Assembly (NCBI GenBank): GCA_044892525.1
Contig: CM097886.1
Location: 175,696,312 to 175,760,311, forward strand
Reading direction: 5' to 3'
DNA from: Schmidtea polychroa
Lineage: Eukaryota
DNA length: 64,000 bases
The translations under genes were made by a program, and so were the position numbers. Under the pieces are notes generated by a model that was given only the letters and a program-made list of their open reading frames with translations, was not told where the DNA came from and ran no database searches. Positions 37,110-58,768 of this stretch are shown piece by piece; positions within the stretch are counted from its first letter, which is position 1; each line of letters begins with the position of its first letter.

Positions 37110-37237
37110 NNNNNNNNNNNNNNNNNNNNNNNNNNNNNNNNNNNNNNNNNNNNNNNNNNNNNNNNNNNNNNNNNNNNNNNNNNNNNNNNNNNNNNNNNNN
37201 NNNNNNNNNNNNNNNNNNNNNNNNNNNNNNNNNNNNN
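37110..37237. other. Assembly gap (N run)
   Basis: 128 Ns. Confidence 1.
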
Positions 37238-41533: not shown

Positions 41534-41913
41534 NNNNNNNNNNNNNNNNNNNNNNNNNNNNNNNNNNNNNNNNNNNNNNNNNNNNNNNNNNNNNNNNNNN
41601 NNNNNNNNNNNNNNNNNNNNNNNNNNNNNNNNNNNNNNNNNNNNNNNNNNNNNNNNNNNNNNNNNNNNNNNNNNNNNNNNNNNNNNNNNNNNNNNNNNNN
41701 NNNNNNNNNNNNNNNNNNNNNNNNNNNNNNNNNNNNNNNNNNNNNNNNNNNNNNNNNNNNNNNNNNNNNNNNNNNNNNNNNNNNNNNNNNNNNNNNNNNN
41801 NNNNNNNNNNNNNNNNNNNNNNNNNNNNNNNNNNNNNNNNNNNNNNNNNNNNNNNNNNNNNNNNNNNNNNNNNNNNNNNNNNNNNNNNNNNNNNNNNNNN
41901 NNNNNNNNNNNNN
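41534..41913. other. Assembly gap (N run)
   Basis: 380 Ns. Confidence 1.
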
Positions 41914-46687: not shown

Positions 46688-46736
46688 CTAAATGGAAAAT
46701 CGTTCAAATAATCAATAAATTGTACTAGAACTTTAC

Positions 46737-46819
46737 TTCTAGAATCATTTTGAATTCGTCAACAGAATCCTTTATTTCATTAAATGTTGCTGAGAATCTT
46801 TCATAAGTTTTATTCAAAT
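46737..46819 (-). CDS. Spectraplakin small exon
   Basis: Reads DLNKTYERFSATFNEIKDSVDEFKMILE. Phase 1 acceptor, phase 0 donor. Confidence 0.82.
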
Positions 46820-46876
46820 CTAAATTCAAACAAAAACAAAATATTAACAAATAATGAAATTTAAAATAACACTTTC

Positions 46877-47356
46877 NNNNNNNNNNNNNNNNNNNNNNNN
46901 NNNNNNNNNNNNNNNNNNNNNNNNNNNNNNNNNNNNNNNNNNNNNNNNNNNNNNNNNNNNNNNNNNNNNNNNNNNNNNNNNNNNNNNNNNNNNNNNNNNN
47001 NNNNNNNNNNNNNNNNNNNNNNNNNNNNNNNNNNNNNNNNNNNNNNNNNNNNNNNNNNNNNNNNNNNNNNNNNNNNNNNNNNNNNNNNNNNNNNNNNNNN
47101 TGAAATTGATTTCACTAATGACAGCACATTTTTCATCGATCCAGTTTTTCCATTTATTTNNNNNNNNNNNNNNNNNNNNNNNNNNNNNNNNNNNNNNNNN
47201 NNNNNNNNNNNNNNNNNNNNNNNNNNNNNNNNNNNNNNNNNNNNNNNNNNNNNNNNNNNNNNNNNNNNNNNNNNNNNNNNNNNNNNNNNNNNNNNNNNNN
47301 NNNNNNNNNNNNNNNNNNNNNNNNNNNNNNNNNNNNNNNNNNNNNNNNNNNNNNNN
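46877..47356. other. Two assembly gaps flanking a 59-bp duplicated island
   Basis: Ns at 46877-47100 and 47160-47356. Bases 47101-47159 are identical to 47357-47415. Confidence 0.97.
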
Positions 47357-48898: not shown

Positions 48899-49014
48899 CT
48901 TCGGGTTCAATAATTTTTGGAACACCCAATTCCTTTTGAGCAGTATTGAAGGCCATTTCTAAATTTTGTTGAGCAGTATTTTTGGAAATCGATTTCAAAT
49001 CAATTAAATCTGGT
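48899..49014 (-). CDS. CH2 exon
   Basis: Reads RPDLIDLKSISKNTAQQNLEMAFNTAQKELGVPKIIEPE. Phase 2/1. Confidence 0.95.
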
Positions 49015-49074: not shown

Positions 49075-49241
49075 CTTTTTTTATGAATTAGTGCCAAAAA
49101 TGCTTTTCCGTCTTTCCAGCTTGATGAGAAATTTTCTATATTTATATCAGGATAATCTTCAAGAGCTTTTCTAGACCACTGAAGTAGAATTTGTTTGATA
49201 GATAAATCGTCTGATTTACTCGATTGTACAATATCTTTAAA
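49075..49241 (-). CDS. CH2 first exon
   Basis: Reads FKDIVQSSKSDDLSIKQILLQWSRKALEDYPDINIENFSSSWKDGKAFLALIHKK. Acceptor ttttttcAG at 49242, phase 0. Confidence 0.95.
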
Positions 49242-49352: not shown

Positions 49353-49424
49353 AGATTTGTATTTGTATTTCGACAATGAGTCTGGCCTATTAGTAATTTG
49401 AAGGGTGTTATTTGTTGATTTCAT
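49353..49424 (-). CDS. Candidate alternative first coding exon (MKSTNNTLQITNRPDSLSKYKYKS), CH1-less isoform
   Basis: ATG with A at -3, 24 open codons and consensus donor TCT|GTAAGT in phase 0, 111 bp from the phase-0 CH2 acceptor. No transcript evidence. Confidence 0.6.
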
Positions 49425-50411
49425 GTTGAAAAATATTATAAATCGATCAAAAATTTATTAAAAAATTCACATTTTCAACTCAACATGGTTAAAAAAAATT
49501 TCTATAGAAATCTAAAAACATTGCACATGTTTAAAAGAATCGATTGATTTCATTCACCAATCAGAACTCCTCAATCACATGTGTGTGTGTGTTTGCATGC
49601 GTATACGTGTGTGTCAGAGTCTATGGATTGGTTCTCTGAGACTTCTGGAATAGAATTTAAGAAAACTTTCTTAGCAAAATAATAATAATTCTTTTTAAAA
49701 ATAAATAATTGTAAAATTTATTAAAAATAAAATCAATAAATAATAAATCAATTGAAAAAACTTACATATAATCAATTTGATAGAAATTAATGAATTTTAA
49801 ATAATAAATTGATCAAAAATTGAATGCTAAACAAAAATGATGAGTTCGATATTTAAAGATCAAACAACACGCCAAAATGATCACAAAACAACCTATTAGC
49901 ACCAGTGTGCTGATTTTCAGCATTAATATCAATAAATTAATGAGTAGACTTGTGCAAATTAGATCAGTGATGCATTTTGCTGGCTTTCTATTGGTTTATT
50001 TATTATTGTTATAATTATTATTTAGATTGTTATTAGAGTTGTTATTTATTTATTGCTTGCTTACCAAAAGGCCGTATATCAATAGTAACCATCAAACTTT
50101 GTTGTGTATCTTGGGATAATTAAATGTTTCGGCTCAAACATTCTAATATGTCGCCCGGTTTCAGTAATTTAGTAAATCAATCCGATTTTAAAATAATTGA
50201 TATTATTTACTCTCTAGCACTACCACTACACTTTTTGTGTTACATATTGAAAATTGAGGCCGTTTGAAATTTGGGTAACTGATAAGACATATATTATATC
50301 CTCCAATAATAAAATCCTGATTATGTCCATAGATATTTTTTATTAATTAAATATTCAAAATTTTGTTTTTAATTGTCATGAAATATTCTTGACAATTTAG
50401 AAGTGGGAAAA

Positions 50412-53110
50412 TGTCTATCACGGAAAACCAATATCAAACTAAGATGTGCTGAAAGTTTTGTTTATTACGTGTAATTTTCCCTCATTTTGGAATCGTTAAC
50501 AACCCGTAACACTAAGCGTTTTAAAAATTTTTTTGAGACGTATTTCAACAGTCAAATGATTTGGTCATTTATGATAAAATAAATTTCTGTGTATTATTTG
50601 GTTTCTACTTGTTAATAGTTGTCTTTTAGTCTATTTAAGTCAAACTTTTTGATCCCTATCACTTTAGTAAAAATATAAGGAATGTGCAGATTGCTAGTCT
50701 TCACGTGTTTAACAGAAGTCTGGCTTGATGGTGACAAATTCTTAATACTAGGCCTCTATACATAAAGTTCAGATTTAATTATGATAAAATATTCTGATAA
50801 AATTTGGTAGATAATTTACAAATATAAGAAAGATAACTATTATACTTTCCATTTTGGTTAAGCATAATTAACGACAAACAATATAAGGCTTGATATGATA
50901 TATGAAGGATGCCGCTTTGTTTCTTGATGATGGCAGATTACTAGGATAAGACGTCACTCACGGTCTAGTGCTTGTTTTATTACTCTGTACAGCACCATCC
51001 ATTTATACCCGGATCATAGATTTTATATTTTGCGTATAGCTAATAGCATATATACCAGGGATGGGCAAGTGCAGCTCTTTGATGAGGTCTGTGTCTCCCA
51101 TTGAGATCTGTTGTGGCTCTTTGTAATACGGGGGAAACCTGTATTTTGCTCTCGATGACCTCATGCGTGCCCACTCCTGCTATATACCATACATCTTTTG
51201 ATTTGATGTTTTGAATTTGATGATCAGGACCAGTAAAAACTTTTAACGCAAATAAAATGATTTGTCTCTTGTTTATTGACTTCTTTTTTTAAAATAAAAT
51301 GTAGTTATTTACTTTAGAAAGTACTACTTCTCTTACTGATAACTAAATTTGACCTTGTTGAGTAAATGATTGCTATACAATTGGAAAATTAGGCATTATA
51401 ACCCCTTAAAGAACTATAATCACCCACCAACGCGTTATTGGTTATTGATTATTAATCAAACTTATCAATAAATGAAAGATTGCGATCCAATATGAAATTG
51501 AGCACATGTAATATTCAAGATCTTTATGTATGGGCTTACATGTGTAAATACGACAATAATTATATAATTTATTTTGATAAATTTATCTATTGGTCAAATA
51601 CGAGATATTTGTGAATGGTGGTAATGTGAACAGATTATGAATGTGAAATTTCAAATGTATCAATGTAACTCTTTACATTGATTTAGTTATTTAGTTATTT
51701 CGTTATTTATTTAGTTATTTCGCACATTCAAAAGTTTTTTTCTATTTTTTAAAAATATATTTACCTAGAAAAATCTATATTTAAAGTCATTGCATATCTA
51801 GGTGACACATACCTATATTTTAAGTAGGTTTGGATCAGTTCATATATGATAGAAATGATGATCTATGTATTATCTATAGATATAACAATATTCATAAGAG
51901 TTACAATAATTCCATTGTGTTGATCAATGTCTACGGATCAGCAAAAAAAAATAATTAAATTGAATTTGAAATGTGAAATGTGAGTTAGTTGAATGGTATT
52001 GAACCAGGTTTAATTTAAGAGAACAGCAGGGGTCGTAATTGTTATGTATTGAGATGCAATTAATTATTAAATTAATAATTAAAGTTTATATTGCTAGTTT
52101 ATATTGCTGGTTCTATATTTTGCACATTATTTATTTTTTAATTTGTATAAATCGGCCCGCAAAAGATTCTAGATTAACAAAGAGGCCTGTGTTGTGATTT
52201 GGGTTGGGTAGGCCTGGTGTATTATATTGATCTTTTATGTTTATAATTTTTTCTGTTTTCTATCTTTTTCCCTTTCGATATAAAAATTTAATAGCCAAAG
52301 TTCAATGAAAAACTAACCACACTACCAATAAAAGAGATTACTACGCAACGCAATCTTGAAATATATATCGTCTGGATTAAAATTCTTTTTCAGTAAAATT
52401 ATTCATAATTATAAGAATGAAATGAAATTGCCCATTTTTATTAATTAATTAAAGGTATCTTAAACAATTTATTTAATAGCACAAAGCACTATGCACCTGG
52501 ATATAATTATTAATATTTATTTAATTATCAAAATAAATTGTAAATAGTTAGGAATAGAATCAATATTACAAATACTTAAACAGTATAACTGTTTTTGAGT
52601 AATTAAGTGCATTTTATTATACACGGAAAGTTCGTCCAACTTTTTCAACATATGCATATAAGATTTTTATCTGTGTCAAAAGCTTAACCAGAAATGAATC
52701 TTGTTAAAAAAGGCATTCCCAAGAAAGATTAGCAAAATTTATGTTACTGCGACTCGTATTTAAATCTGGACTTTATGTATAGAGGCCTAGTATTAAGAAT
52801 TTGTCACCATCAAGTCAGACTTTTGTTAAGCATATGAAGACTAGTAATTTCCACATTTCTTTCTTTTTACTTAATGGGGATAATAAAGTTTGACTTAAAA
52901 AGACAACAATTAACATGTTGAAACCAAATAATACACAGAAATTTACTTTATAATAAATGACCAAATCATTTGACTGTTGAAATACGTTTCAAAAAAAATT
53001 TAAAACGCTTAGTGTTACGGGTTTTTACCGATCCCAGAATGAGGAAAAAACATCCGATTTGTATGTTTTAGTTTGATATTTCTCTTAATATTGATAATCT
53101 GTGATAGATA
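50412..53110. repeat. Long imperfect inverted repeat (core arms about 50501-50778 and 52760-53023); possibly a long-TIR DNA transposon
   Basis: The arms are reverse complements, including a perfect stretch of about 45 bp (TTGATGGTGACAAATTCTTAATACTAGGCCTCTATACATAAAGT). Weaker similarity extends outward to TGTCTATCAC / GTGATAGATA. No TSD found. Confidence 0.85.
51056..51179. mobile_element. Small hAT MITE inside the inverted-repeat spacer
   Basis: CAGGGATGGGCA ... TGCCCACTCCTG (10/12); flanks atatatac / ctatatac. Confidence 0.7.
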
Positions 53111-54267
53111 TTTATTGGGTGTAAATGAACACTCGTACTTAGTGTTATCATATCAATGTTAAACAATTTTTGTAACCAGAGAAAATTTTTTCATAATTTT
53201 ACCCAATTAATATTAATAATTTAGCATAACAACAAATTGTAATGATTTTGGGTCTTGGATAGTGTAAATCGGTCAAAAAATTATTCGAAAGAATCGATTT
53301 TTTTGTAAATTATTTGAATTAGTAAAGCATACTTTTTAATATGTTAATGATTTGATTTTAAAATAAAATTAACAATTAAAAATTTCACATAAATCATTAT
53401 TAATTAAACAACTCAAAAACCATGATAAAAATGAATAAAAATCACGTTAAGTTTAAGTAAATATTTACTTATTTTCTCAAATATCATGTAATTATAAAAT
53501 TTTATGTGAAAAAACAAAAATTAACAAAGAAAATTGTGAATAGTTTAATAAGTAGTATTGTTATTAATCATTAATAATGTTCAAAATAGATCTTAGCAGA
53601 ATCGGCAATAGAATTTCCTTATTGGTTATCGTAAAGGTTAATTCTATTGGTTGATTAAATTTTACATTTCATGCGATATGTTAACTAAAAATTTGATTCT
53701 AAATTTATTGCAATTGGTCGATTTTATCATCAGCTTTTTTTATTCATTTCATGATTTCAGCATTAATAAATTATTGATTAATAAATTTATTATTTTCAAT
53801 AGAGATAACAAATAAATTCAATTGATCAAAAAAATATCTATCATTTGTGTGATGTTTTCAAAAGACTAAATTTATTAGGCTATGAGAAAATTTTTAAAAT
53901 ATTATTTCTATTTTTAGAAACAATCTGCCAACGGCATCGTAGAAAATCACTGATGTAAAACAATGTCTGTGGTATATCAAAATAAATATTTAAATAATTA
54001 ATATAATTGATTTGAATTCATTCAGAAAAATGATTGATTTTAATTAATTTATTAAATTATTATAAATTAAAAACTAGACATTTTTATCATTACTGTTCAA
54101 TTATTAATAATTAATAATTTTAAAATTGTCCCTATCAATCTTTAATTTTTTAAATCAATTTTATTGGTTTCCAATATCAATGTTTTTGTAAATTGATTTA
54201 AATCGATTATCCAAATAAAAAAATCAATTCTGTCGATAATTGACAGTTATAAAAATTTATGACTTAC

Positions 54268-54405
54268 TTGTGGTTTTGATATCTTCTTCGATATACGATT
54301 GGCAATTAGACGACAGGCACAAATAATAATCAATCCCACAGAAAATGTCCAAAACCCGAAAACGATTATATTACTCCAAATGAATTCATATTGTTTCGCA
54401 TACAT
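54268..54405 (-). CDS. Candidate alternative first coding exon encoding a transmembrane helix (MYAKQYEFIWSNIIVFGFWTFSVGLIIICACRLIANRISKKISKPQ)
   Basis: ATG directly after an in-frame TAA, 46 open codons, a hydrophobic stretch followed by basic residues, and consensus donor CAA|GTAAGT in phase 0, compatible with the CH2 acceptor. Confidence 0.65.
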
Positions 54406-55337
54406 TTAAGGAGGAAAAAAGGTAATTTTTCTTTCCAGCAAGAAAATAAATTAATAAAATAAGAAAAATGTTAGGTAGTTGACAATGATAGACGATTCGA
54501 ACGGAAACTGTTTTTAACAAATTAAATATTATATAAGAAATGCGTACAAGGATAGTGATGTTTGTAATATAGTACTGATAAGTTTGTGTATGCCAGTACA
54601 AATTAGCACTAAGTATGTGTGTGTGCGCGCGTTGGTGCAAGCGTATATGTGTTGTAATAGTAGAGACAAGGCATGCATGTAAATCATGGAATACAGCGTT
54701 ACGCATAGACTTGTCTGAAAAAGAATAGTTGTTCAATTGTGTGGTTGTCCATTGTATACGGCTATGCTTATGAAAACTTTTTATCAATTTAAGGATTAAC
54801 CATTTAATTGTATTTTTTTTATTAGACAATGACCAAAATATTTCTAATTGAAGGTAAATAATTTTTAATCAGATATGCTCTACTTACTATTGTAAATATA
54901 TTTTAACTAATCATATTTGATAAATTAGAAAAATTATTGATTGTGTAATTTTGTTTTCGACGAGAATTCAATATAAATAAAAAAATTATATTATTTTTAA
55001 TTGATTTTTTAAACTATTTATATGAATTTAATAGTTTATCAAAGTCCAACATATTAGCTGTACGATAGGTTAATGAATTAATTCGTTTGACTGTTTAATG
55101 ACTGACCCCTTCCGTGCAGTTTGCGTTCCATAATGCTTGAATTCTATTGAAAAATTATTTGGTACTTAAGGAAAATCAAAATAAAGATTTGTTCAATGTT
55201 CATTATATGACACTTTATATTAGTAATTTCTTAAGAAATATATAATCTGTCTCAATTTTTGAATTTCTAGACAATATTAAGCCAGTGGTGGATTTGGGTT
55301 ATGTTACGCGGAGGCTGAGAGAATGTTATGGGCCAAC

Positions 55338-55426
55338 CAGGGATTCGGAGCGGAGCGGAGCAGGAGCGCTTACTAATGGAGCGGTGTCTGGAGCGGAGCG
55401 TTTTTAACCACCGCTCTGAATCCCTG
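55338..55426. mobile_element. 89-bp hAT-like MITE with GGAGC internal repeats
   Basis: CAGGGATTCGGAGCGG ... CCGCTCTGAATCCCTG (15/16 TIR); TSD degenerate. Confidence 0.7.
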
Positions 55427-55849
55427 GGGGCGATATCAAAATTTAAAATATAATTTTTCTGAGAATTTAATAAATAATAATTACTAGCCCTATTCGAGTA
55501 CTTTCACAAGAATCAACAATCTAAACAAAGACTTTAAAATTTTAAGAATGTATATACAATGTATATCCAAATAATTTATTTAATAAACTAAGTAAGAAGT
55601 AAGTTTTTAAAAAATACTTTCTGTGTGAATTCATTGAAGCAAAACGATTTATCATCTGTTCAATTAAAAATAATGCTAATTAAAATAGACGTTCGTTAGT
55701 CATTGTTGGTTGCATTGTTGTCATTTCAGTAGTAGAAGTTCTAACGAGAAGAGTCAAGCAGATATTATATAATATTGAGATTTATTATATACATTTATAA
55801 AAAAACACTAACTCTTAGAACTTGTGACTTTTAGTGTATCCCTGGGAAG

Positions 55850-56667
55850 TAGGGACTGAAACCGAACCCGAACCCGAACCCAAAAACTCATGCAGGTTCG
55901 GGTTCATAAATTTAAAAAATTTATTCTGTTAATTTTTTTAAGAATAATAAAGAGGACAAAAAAGTAGTACAGTTTTCGTATTCGTTAATGTTGCCTAGCT
56001 TATTTTCTTTACTACAATACAAAATACAAATAGTAAAGTTTCTCGTGTTCATTAATGTTTCCTAACGATTATGTTTTTATTATTATTTGGAATTTTGACT
56101 TTCTATGATTAAAGTTTAACAATAATCATTATTAATCAATAAACATGTTTTTTTTGTTTGTTAAATTCTATATTAAGAAGAGGATATTCTTGAAGAAGTT
56201 TTAAAGAAAGAAAAGTTTTTTCAAATTAATTCGGAAAATATAAATTCCACATCTTTCATTGATAGTTCAGTTAAAAATAAGATGGAAATATACGAAAATT
56301 ATCCAAGGCTAGCAAAAGAAAAAAGTATTTTAGAATTTTGGGAGCAATATAAAATACAAACACCTTTACTATATCAGGTTTTGCAATATTTGCAATCCCT
56401 GTTACGCAAGTAAGCGTAGAGAGGGCTTTTTCAGCTTTAAAATGTATACTATCACCACAACGAGCAAATCTAACAGAAGAGAACTTAAAAAATATTTTAA
56501 CTGTTAAATTAAATGAAAAATTTTGGAAAAATAAATAAAAGATAGGGCTTTTTTTTCGAAATTTTGAACCCGAACTTGAACCCTGGACCGAACCTGAACC
56601 CGAACTTTTAATTTTGATTAACCCGAACCTGAACCTGAACCCAATATTTTCCGGGTTTCAGTCCCTG
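55850..56667 (+). mobile_element. Internally deleted hAT transposon
   Basis: TIR TAGGGACTGAAACC / GGTTTCAGTCCCTG, perfect 8-bp TSD CTGGGAAG, and CCGAAC subterminal repeats at both ends. Confidence 0.93.
56176..56538 (+). pseudogene. hAT transposase C-terminal dimerisation-domain relic (frameshifted)
   Basis: ILEFWEQYKIQTPLLYQV, then a frameshift to AIFAIPVTQVSVERAFSALKCILSPQRANLTEENLKNIL, the hAT 'P.T.V..ER.FS....R..L' motif. Confidence 0.88.
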
Positions 56668-57137
56668 CTGGGAAGTACCATTTTAATCAAAATCCGTATC
56701 TGTACTATATTTTTTTAATGCAAATTCTTTGAATTATTATATAGACGTCAACCCACATCTATAATATAAACATACATTTTATTATATACAACTAGACTGT
56801 TACAAGCAATAACACCTAAAGGAAAAAACAAACGAAAGATTGAAAGTATGTGTTCATTCATCCTAGATATTGTCAGGCATACTTTAATGTAGCATGTTGC
56901 AATCGTGTCTTATCTACATACATAGACATATGATAATTTTGTGCATCTTTCAACTAATTATTCAACTGAAAGAAAAATTTATTCAAGTGGTTTAATTAGA
57001 AAATTTAAGTTTGTACTAATAAAAGAAAATTATCCTACCCCCATTTTCGACAAAAACCTTTTCTTTATGTAGTATTTGAAGATTGAAATAAGAACAAAAC
57101 TTTTAAAAGAACATCTTGAAAATACTTTTCGGATAGC

Positions 57138-58675: not shown

Positions 58676-58768
58676 CTGAAAGAAAAGAATTATTATCCAA
58701 ACAAGTCCGAGAGTTAATTTTGGATTGCCATCAACTAGATCTTCAGCATGAATGTTTACTAGTTTTAT
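58676..58768 (-). CDS. CH1 C-terminal exon
   Basis: Reads [31 protein letters not shown], the hallmark actin-binding-domain motif. Phase 0/0, CAG|GTAAAT donor. Confidence 0.96.

Follow-up and report, generated by a model that had tools for sequence, protein, structure and literature searches.

Known spectraplakin N-termini and the present locus

Spectraplakins connect the actin, microtubule and intermediate-filament systems, and where they act is decided by their N-terminal isoforms.

Isoforms that start internally and retain only the second calponin homology domain (CH2) have been described in all spectraplakins (bioRxiv 10.1101/122010; PMC3352950). In these type-3 or C-type forms, which include Shot C-type, MACF1a3 and dystonin-a/b3, CH1 is lost and actin binding is therefore weak (bioRxiv 10.1101/122010; PMC3352950). 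Dystonin-a/b3 carries a putative myristoylation motif before its single CH domain (PMC6975176), while dystonin-a/b2 has a transmembrane (TM) domain ahead of the full actin-binding domain (PMC6975176; PMC3352950). A preliminary description of the locus studied here had invoked dystonin-a2 as a precedent. It correctly placed the TM leader before a complete CH1 and CH2 (PMC6975176), but the perinuclear targeting that it took as established has been both reported and disputed (bioRxiv 10.1101/122010).

Here, we analyzed a 64,000-nucleotide stretch of Schmidtea polychroa DNA (the window; all coordinates are window positions) that carries a spectraplakin gene on its minus strand. Between the CH1 and CH2 exons lies a short open frame, 54268..54405, which encodes a hydrophobic leader. 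We see an even chance that the gene truly uses it as an alternative first coding exon.

The candidate resembles the type-3/C-type isoforms in that it lies between the CH1 and CH2 exons and would supply a private leader in frame to CH2. Their leaders, in contrast, are hydrophilic or lipidated, whereas the candidate leader would be a membrane-spanning helix. The resemblance to dystonin-a/b3 is functional only, as the candidate lacks its Met-Gly motif (it begins MYAKQ). With dystonin-a2/b2, the candidate would share an isoform-specific N-terminal hydrophobic helix that anchors a giant cytoplasmic linker at internal membranes. However, the dystonin helix precedes a complete CH1 and CH2, whereas the candidate exon is downstream of all CH1 exons and can join CH2 only. 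No sequence similar to the candidate leader was detected: a phmmer search of 1.84 billion representatives gave 0 matches.

Because CH2-only isoforms and dystonin-a/b3 are known, the concept of a membrane-associated giant plakin that lacks CH1 is not new. If the exon is real, the novelty would lie in a membrane-spanning helix at the position that replaces CH1, in a flatworm, and without recognizable homology to the vertebrate leaders.

The spectraplakin gene and its CH1-CH2 intron

The host gene was identified by Pfam matches to spectraplakin domains within the window; the C-terminal EF-hand and GAR domains lie beyond it. The last CH1 exon (IKLVNIH...ILFFQ; 58676..58768, minus strand) covers PF00307 profile positions 78-108 of 109 and ends at a phase-0 gtaaat donor. 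CH2 is encoded by two minus-strand exons, 49075..49241 and 48899..49014, which are separated by a 60-nt intron and match PF00307 with an E value of 8.5e-18. The first of these opens with a phase-0 acceptor (cag|FKDIVQ), the would-be splice partner of the candidate exon.

The CH1-CH2 intron spans 58675-49242 (9,434 nt), and the candidate exon lies inside it, about 5 kb from CH2. The earlier placement of the exon between the last CH1 exon (58676) and the first CH2 exon (49241) is thus correct in all coordinates. The intron contains no Rfam family and no tRNA.

Downstream, a giant exon matches PF00681 (plectin repeats). Its minus-strand frame is stop-free for 10,368 codons (1-31104) and runs off the window edge, and within it a 297-bp plectin-repeat unit (99 aa) is repeated in tandem 102.5 times at 98% identity. 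Runs of N lie in or beside coding exons of the plakin-domain region at 46877-47100 and 47160-47356, and further runs lie at 37110-37237 and 41534-41913. The genome as a whole comprises 781 Mb, with four very large contigs and a non-coding GC content of 24-30%.

A candidate membrane-spanning leader exon

Reading of the minus strand from 54405 to 54262, together with its translation, bears out the start codon, the 46 codons and the phase-0 donor of the preliminary description. The ATG occupies 54405-54403, and the frame continues for 46 codons to ...ISKPQ at 54268. Directly after codon 46, a GTAAGT donor (54262..54267, phase 0) follows, one of only four GTAAGT on the minus strand of the intron. 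Since the CH2 acceptor is also in phase 0, a splice from 54268 to 49241 would be in frame. Left unspliced, the frame reaches a stop 6 codons past the donor and makes a 52-aa ORF. An in-frame TAA lies immediately 5' of the ATG and bars entry into the frame from further 5'. We also considered the candidate as an internal exon and rejected this reading because of that TAA and because an acceptor anywhere upstream would bring stops into the CH1 reading frame.

The predicted leader begins with MYAKQYEFI, followed by an apolar core of 19-22 residues (helix at about residues 10-31) and a basic tail. The hydrophobic segment, IIVFGFWTFSVGLIIICAC, has a mean Kyte-Doolittle (KD) value of 2.46 over 19 residues, and its simple sum on the Hessa scale is -2.1. 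The putative helix has the length and hydrophobicity needed to cross a membrane. Its flanks carry a net charge of about +1 on the N-side and +5 on the C-side, and the tail has five basic residues. The hydrophobic segment with basic residues behind it, as first described, is therefore present. The N-out/C-in orientation that had been proposed from the positive-inside rule agrees with the predicted flanks, whose charge bias fits this topology.

A second candidate leader and sister-species gene models

The preliminary description overlooked a second candidate CH2-only leader exon in the same intron. This exon (MKST...KYKS; 49353..49424, minus strand) has 24 codons and a GTAAGT donor in phase 0, and it lies 111 nt 5' of CH2 exon 1. 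The two candidate leaders share intron, strand, GTAAGT donor, phase and CH2 acceptor, and a related rare element lies upstream of each. The MKST leader differs in being hydrophilic and 24 residues long and in its closeness to CH2 (111 nt, against 5 kb for the TM exon). It also has upstream ATGs and small upstream ORFs within 45-60 nt of its start codon, and it is represented in a sister-species gene model.

That model, P0001 (UniParc UPI000604AB3E, 125 aa), comes from a close relative and splices MKST...KYKS straight into CH2 exons 1 and 2. Its leader differs from that in the window by 4 changes in 24 residues, which is compatible with weak or no constraint. The end of P0001 is a retained intron. 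A query with the CH2 region returned P0001 only, while a query with the 1356-aa exon returned a second model, P0004 (2205 aa; 92% identical over that exon). P0004 contains PF17902, PF00435 and PF00681 and begins downstream of CH2, and its initial M is intronic sequence upstream of the exon near 46725-46850. Both models look like fragmentary gene predictions. This means that the MKST leader is supported at the level of a model only, and that the start codons of these models are no evidence of real N-termini.

Upstream region and a shared rare element

The 266 nt that abut the start codon of the TM exon (54406..54671, minus strand) contain no ATG, the nearest upstream ATG being at 54674-54672. 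The sense strand of this stretch is C-rich and G-poor. Long ATG-free runs are typical of real 5' leaders, and we regard 54406..54671 as a candidate 5' UTR and core promoter. A gap of 266 nt or longer precedes 2.1% of background ORF starts and makes up 1.6% of ATG-to-ATG gaps.

About 230 nt 5' of the TM-exon ATG is an element of roughly 45 nt (ACACATATACGCTTGCA, then a CG/CA run; 54615..54661, minus strand). A second copy (ACACGTATACGCATGCA plus a CA run; 49579..49620, minus strand) lies about 185 nt 5' of the MKST start codon, that is, on the same strand and at a similar distance from its leader. The element common to both leaders, ACACRTATACGCWTGCA plus a CA run, has the consensus ACAC[A/G]TATACGC[A/T]TGCA followed by a CA-rich run. 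An exact search of the 781-Mb genome with the 17-mer pattern gives 4 matches, which represent 3 independent loci; the sites upstream of the two leaders account for 2 of the matches. The other two copies are on contig C2 at 151.82 and 152.23 Mb, within a duplicated locus whose copies are 99.9% identical. The 12-mer core of the element occurs 37 times in the genome, compared with 24 times for a reversed control, which makes it a rare sequence rather than a general promoter motif.

Beyond the element of about 45 nt, comparison of the two leader modules found no colinear similarity, and we rejected a duplicated leader module for want of wider colinearity. The shared element links the two modules without proving function. 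Both the shared motif and the ATG-free stretch, which are at most indirect hints of an internal promoter, were spotted post hoc.

Database and read-word searches

Searches for relatives of the leader peptide were blank throughout. No word-sharing relatives were present among the 25-80 aa proteins of a library of 5.8 billion proteins, the phmmer search described above returned nothing, metagenome contigs gave no match, and the peptide belongs to no Pfam family. Exact look-up of the 52-aa ORF found no recorded product. Exact look-up of P0001 likewise gave no match, and its comparison with metagenome sequences retrieved distant CH proteins only. As these libraries seem nearly devoid of planarian sequences and transcripts, the blank searches carry little weight.

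Four DNA runs and eight RNA-like runs carry the same species label. In the best of the RNA-like runs (X6), 0.04 of the 623 sampled words are present. Were only the CH2 exons and the beginning of the following exon covered, 26 of 623 words would be expected (244 word positions x 0.106); with either leader, the predicted share is about 0.07-0.08. The word share in X6 is close to that of the CH2 exons alone, a weak hint that the TM leader is probably not assembled in this run.

Chance expectation and alternative explanations

Open frames that look transmembrane are common in this genome. In 466 kb of strand, 482 ATG ORFs are 40 codons or longer; 50 of these (about 10%) reach a KD19 of at least 2.0, and TM-likeness alone is thus no evidence beyond chance. 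Far fewer frames start with an ATG, stay open for at least 30 codons and have a GTRAGT donor in any phase, with 13 in 464 kb of strand. Three of these have a KD of at least 1.6; one is the candidate exon and another is a simple ATT repeat.

We then modeled chance with a 4th-order Markov chain trained on local non-coding DNA, from which 12 Mb were simulated. A phase-0 ATG frame of at least 30 codons that ends at GTAAGT occurs at 4.7 per Mb of strand. With an added KD of at least 2.0, the rate is 0.17 per Mb with GTAAGT and up to 1.1 per Mb with a broad donor set. The count from the 464 kb is in agreement with the simulated rate. For the 9,434-nt intron at KD of at least 2.0, the expectation is 0.0016 with GTAAGT, 0.0024 with GTRAGT and 0.010 with the broad donors; summed over the introns of the gene within the window, it is at most about 0.04. 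If the hydrophobicity criterion is dropped, the expectation for the CH1-CH2 intron is still only 0.044. The whole intron holds only three phase-0 ATG-to-donor candidates, among which the TM exon is the longest and has the consensus GTAAGT. The full combination of features is unlikely by chance in the CH1-CH2 intron.

The exon has a GC content of 0.33, compared with 0.19 downstream, which is exon-like and no more than expected of long open frames here. In codon and synonymous-codon log-odds, the candidate falls in the middle of the null distribution, and the real small exons of the gene are not separated from random ORFs either.

One alternative is that 54268..54405 is a chance ORF in an AT-rich intron and is not transcribed as a first exon. 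T-rich codons would account for the hydrophobic residues and A-rich codons for the K, N and R, and one of the few GTAAGT would by luck lie in phase close to where a 52-codon ORF ends. The abundance of transmembrane-like random ORFs is in line with this, and at the simulated rate hundreds of such candidates would occur genome-wide, some of which a scan of many windows would surface. A peptide that has no homologue in the libraries searched, codon usage that gives no signal, a GC content expected for any long open frame and an X6 word share accounted for without the exon all point the same way. However, the expectation is only 0.002-0.01 in the intron and at most about 0.04 over the intronic sequence of the gene in the window, the 266-nt ATG-free leader has a p of about 0.02, and the rare element is found at 3 independent loci in 781 Mb with 2 of its copies upstream of the two leaders. 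Altogether, we consider a chance origin quite possible, but we lean against it.

The sequence could also be transcribed and used otherwise: as a nested small membrane-protein ORF of 52 codons, as a rare or non-productive first exon, or as what is left of a promoter or enhancer from a duplicated leader module, with MKST as the functional CH2-only leader. The unspliced ORF, which closes 6 codons after the donor, does encode a single-pass peptide of 52 aa, though no exact product of it is on record. The element upstream of both leaders hints that the two modules have an origin or regulation in common, and one of them could suffice functionally, but further colinear similarity that would back a duplication is missing. 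MKST is the leader in P0001; however, P0001 and P0004 look fragmentary and thus do not establish MKST as the sole leader. We regard these other uses as improbable.

A predicted membrane-anchored, CH2-only isoform

If 54268..54405 is instead a first coding exon, an internal promoter in the CH1-CH2 intron would drive it, and its donor at 54268 would be spliced to the CH2 acceptor at 49241, following the type-3/C-type logic of an internal start and a CH2-only N-terminus. The 46-residue leader would function as an uncleaved signal anchor with N-exo topology, inserted co-translationally. About 9 residues would then be outside or luminal, followed by one helix and a basic juxtamembrane stretch, and everything from CH2 onward would be cytoplasmic. 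This cytoplasmic part would comprise CH2, the plakin domain, the spectrin rod and possibly the plakin-repeat exon; in principle, the linker of a flatworm membrane isoform may include an exon of more than 100 plakin repeats. The product would be a linker isoform that is integral to a membrane and binds actin weakly. Its transcription, splicing, membrane insertion and target membrane are steps that we infer. In favor of this reading are the complete sequence anatomy, the low chance expectation in the intron, the ATG-free stretch, the single-copy exon and flanks, the rare element upstream of both leaders and strong precedent within the family.

The preliminary description had proposed such a TM-CH2-plakin. 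The sequence it calls for, namely start, frame, donor, phase, helix and charge, is in place, but its framing needs revision in that a membrane-tethered single-CH form exists in dystonin-a/b3 (PMC6975176) and the MKST leader was missed. Tentatively, and with somewhat more doubt than not, we suggest a flatworm spectraplakin isoform in which a signal-anchor exon replaces CH1 and which may have evolved independently of the dystonin-a2 TM leader and the a3 lipid anchor.

Should this be true, a TM CH2-only isoform in an invertebrate would mean that direct membrane anchoring of these giant proteins arose more than once. The 138-nt isoform-specific exon would also offer a handle on membrane tethering in an animal in which RNAi is routine. 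If the exon is unused, it serves as a warning that TM-like ORFs abound in AT-rich genomes.

Repeats in the CH1-CH2 intron

The candidate exon is single copy in the 781-Mb genome, and the surrounding 800 bp are also unique. Neither the exon nor its flanks derive from a transposable element, though other parts of the intron carry dispersed repeats. These include an 80-bp GC-rich element at 55340-55430 (at least 40 copies, spread over all four large contigs), a repeat of about 820 bp at 55847-56690 (at least 40 copies) and one of about 145 bp at 51040-51204 (at least 40 copies). The intron also contains an inverted pair, 52754-53049 and 50475-50784, whose arms are 86% identical and lie about 2 kb apart.
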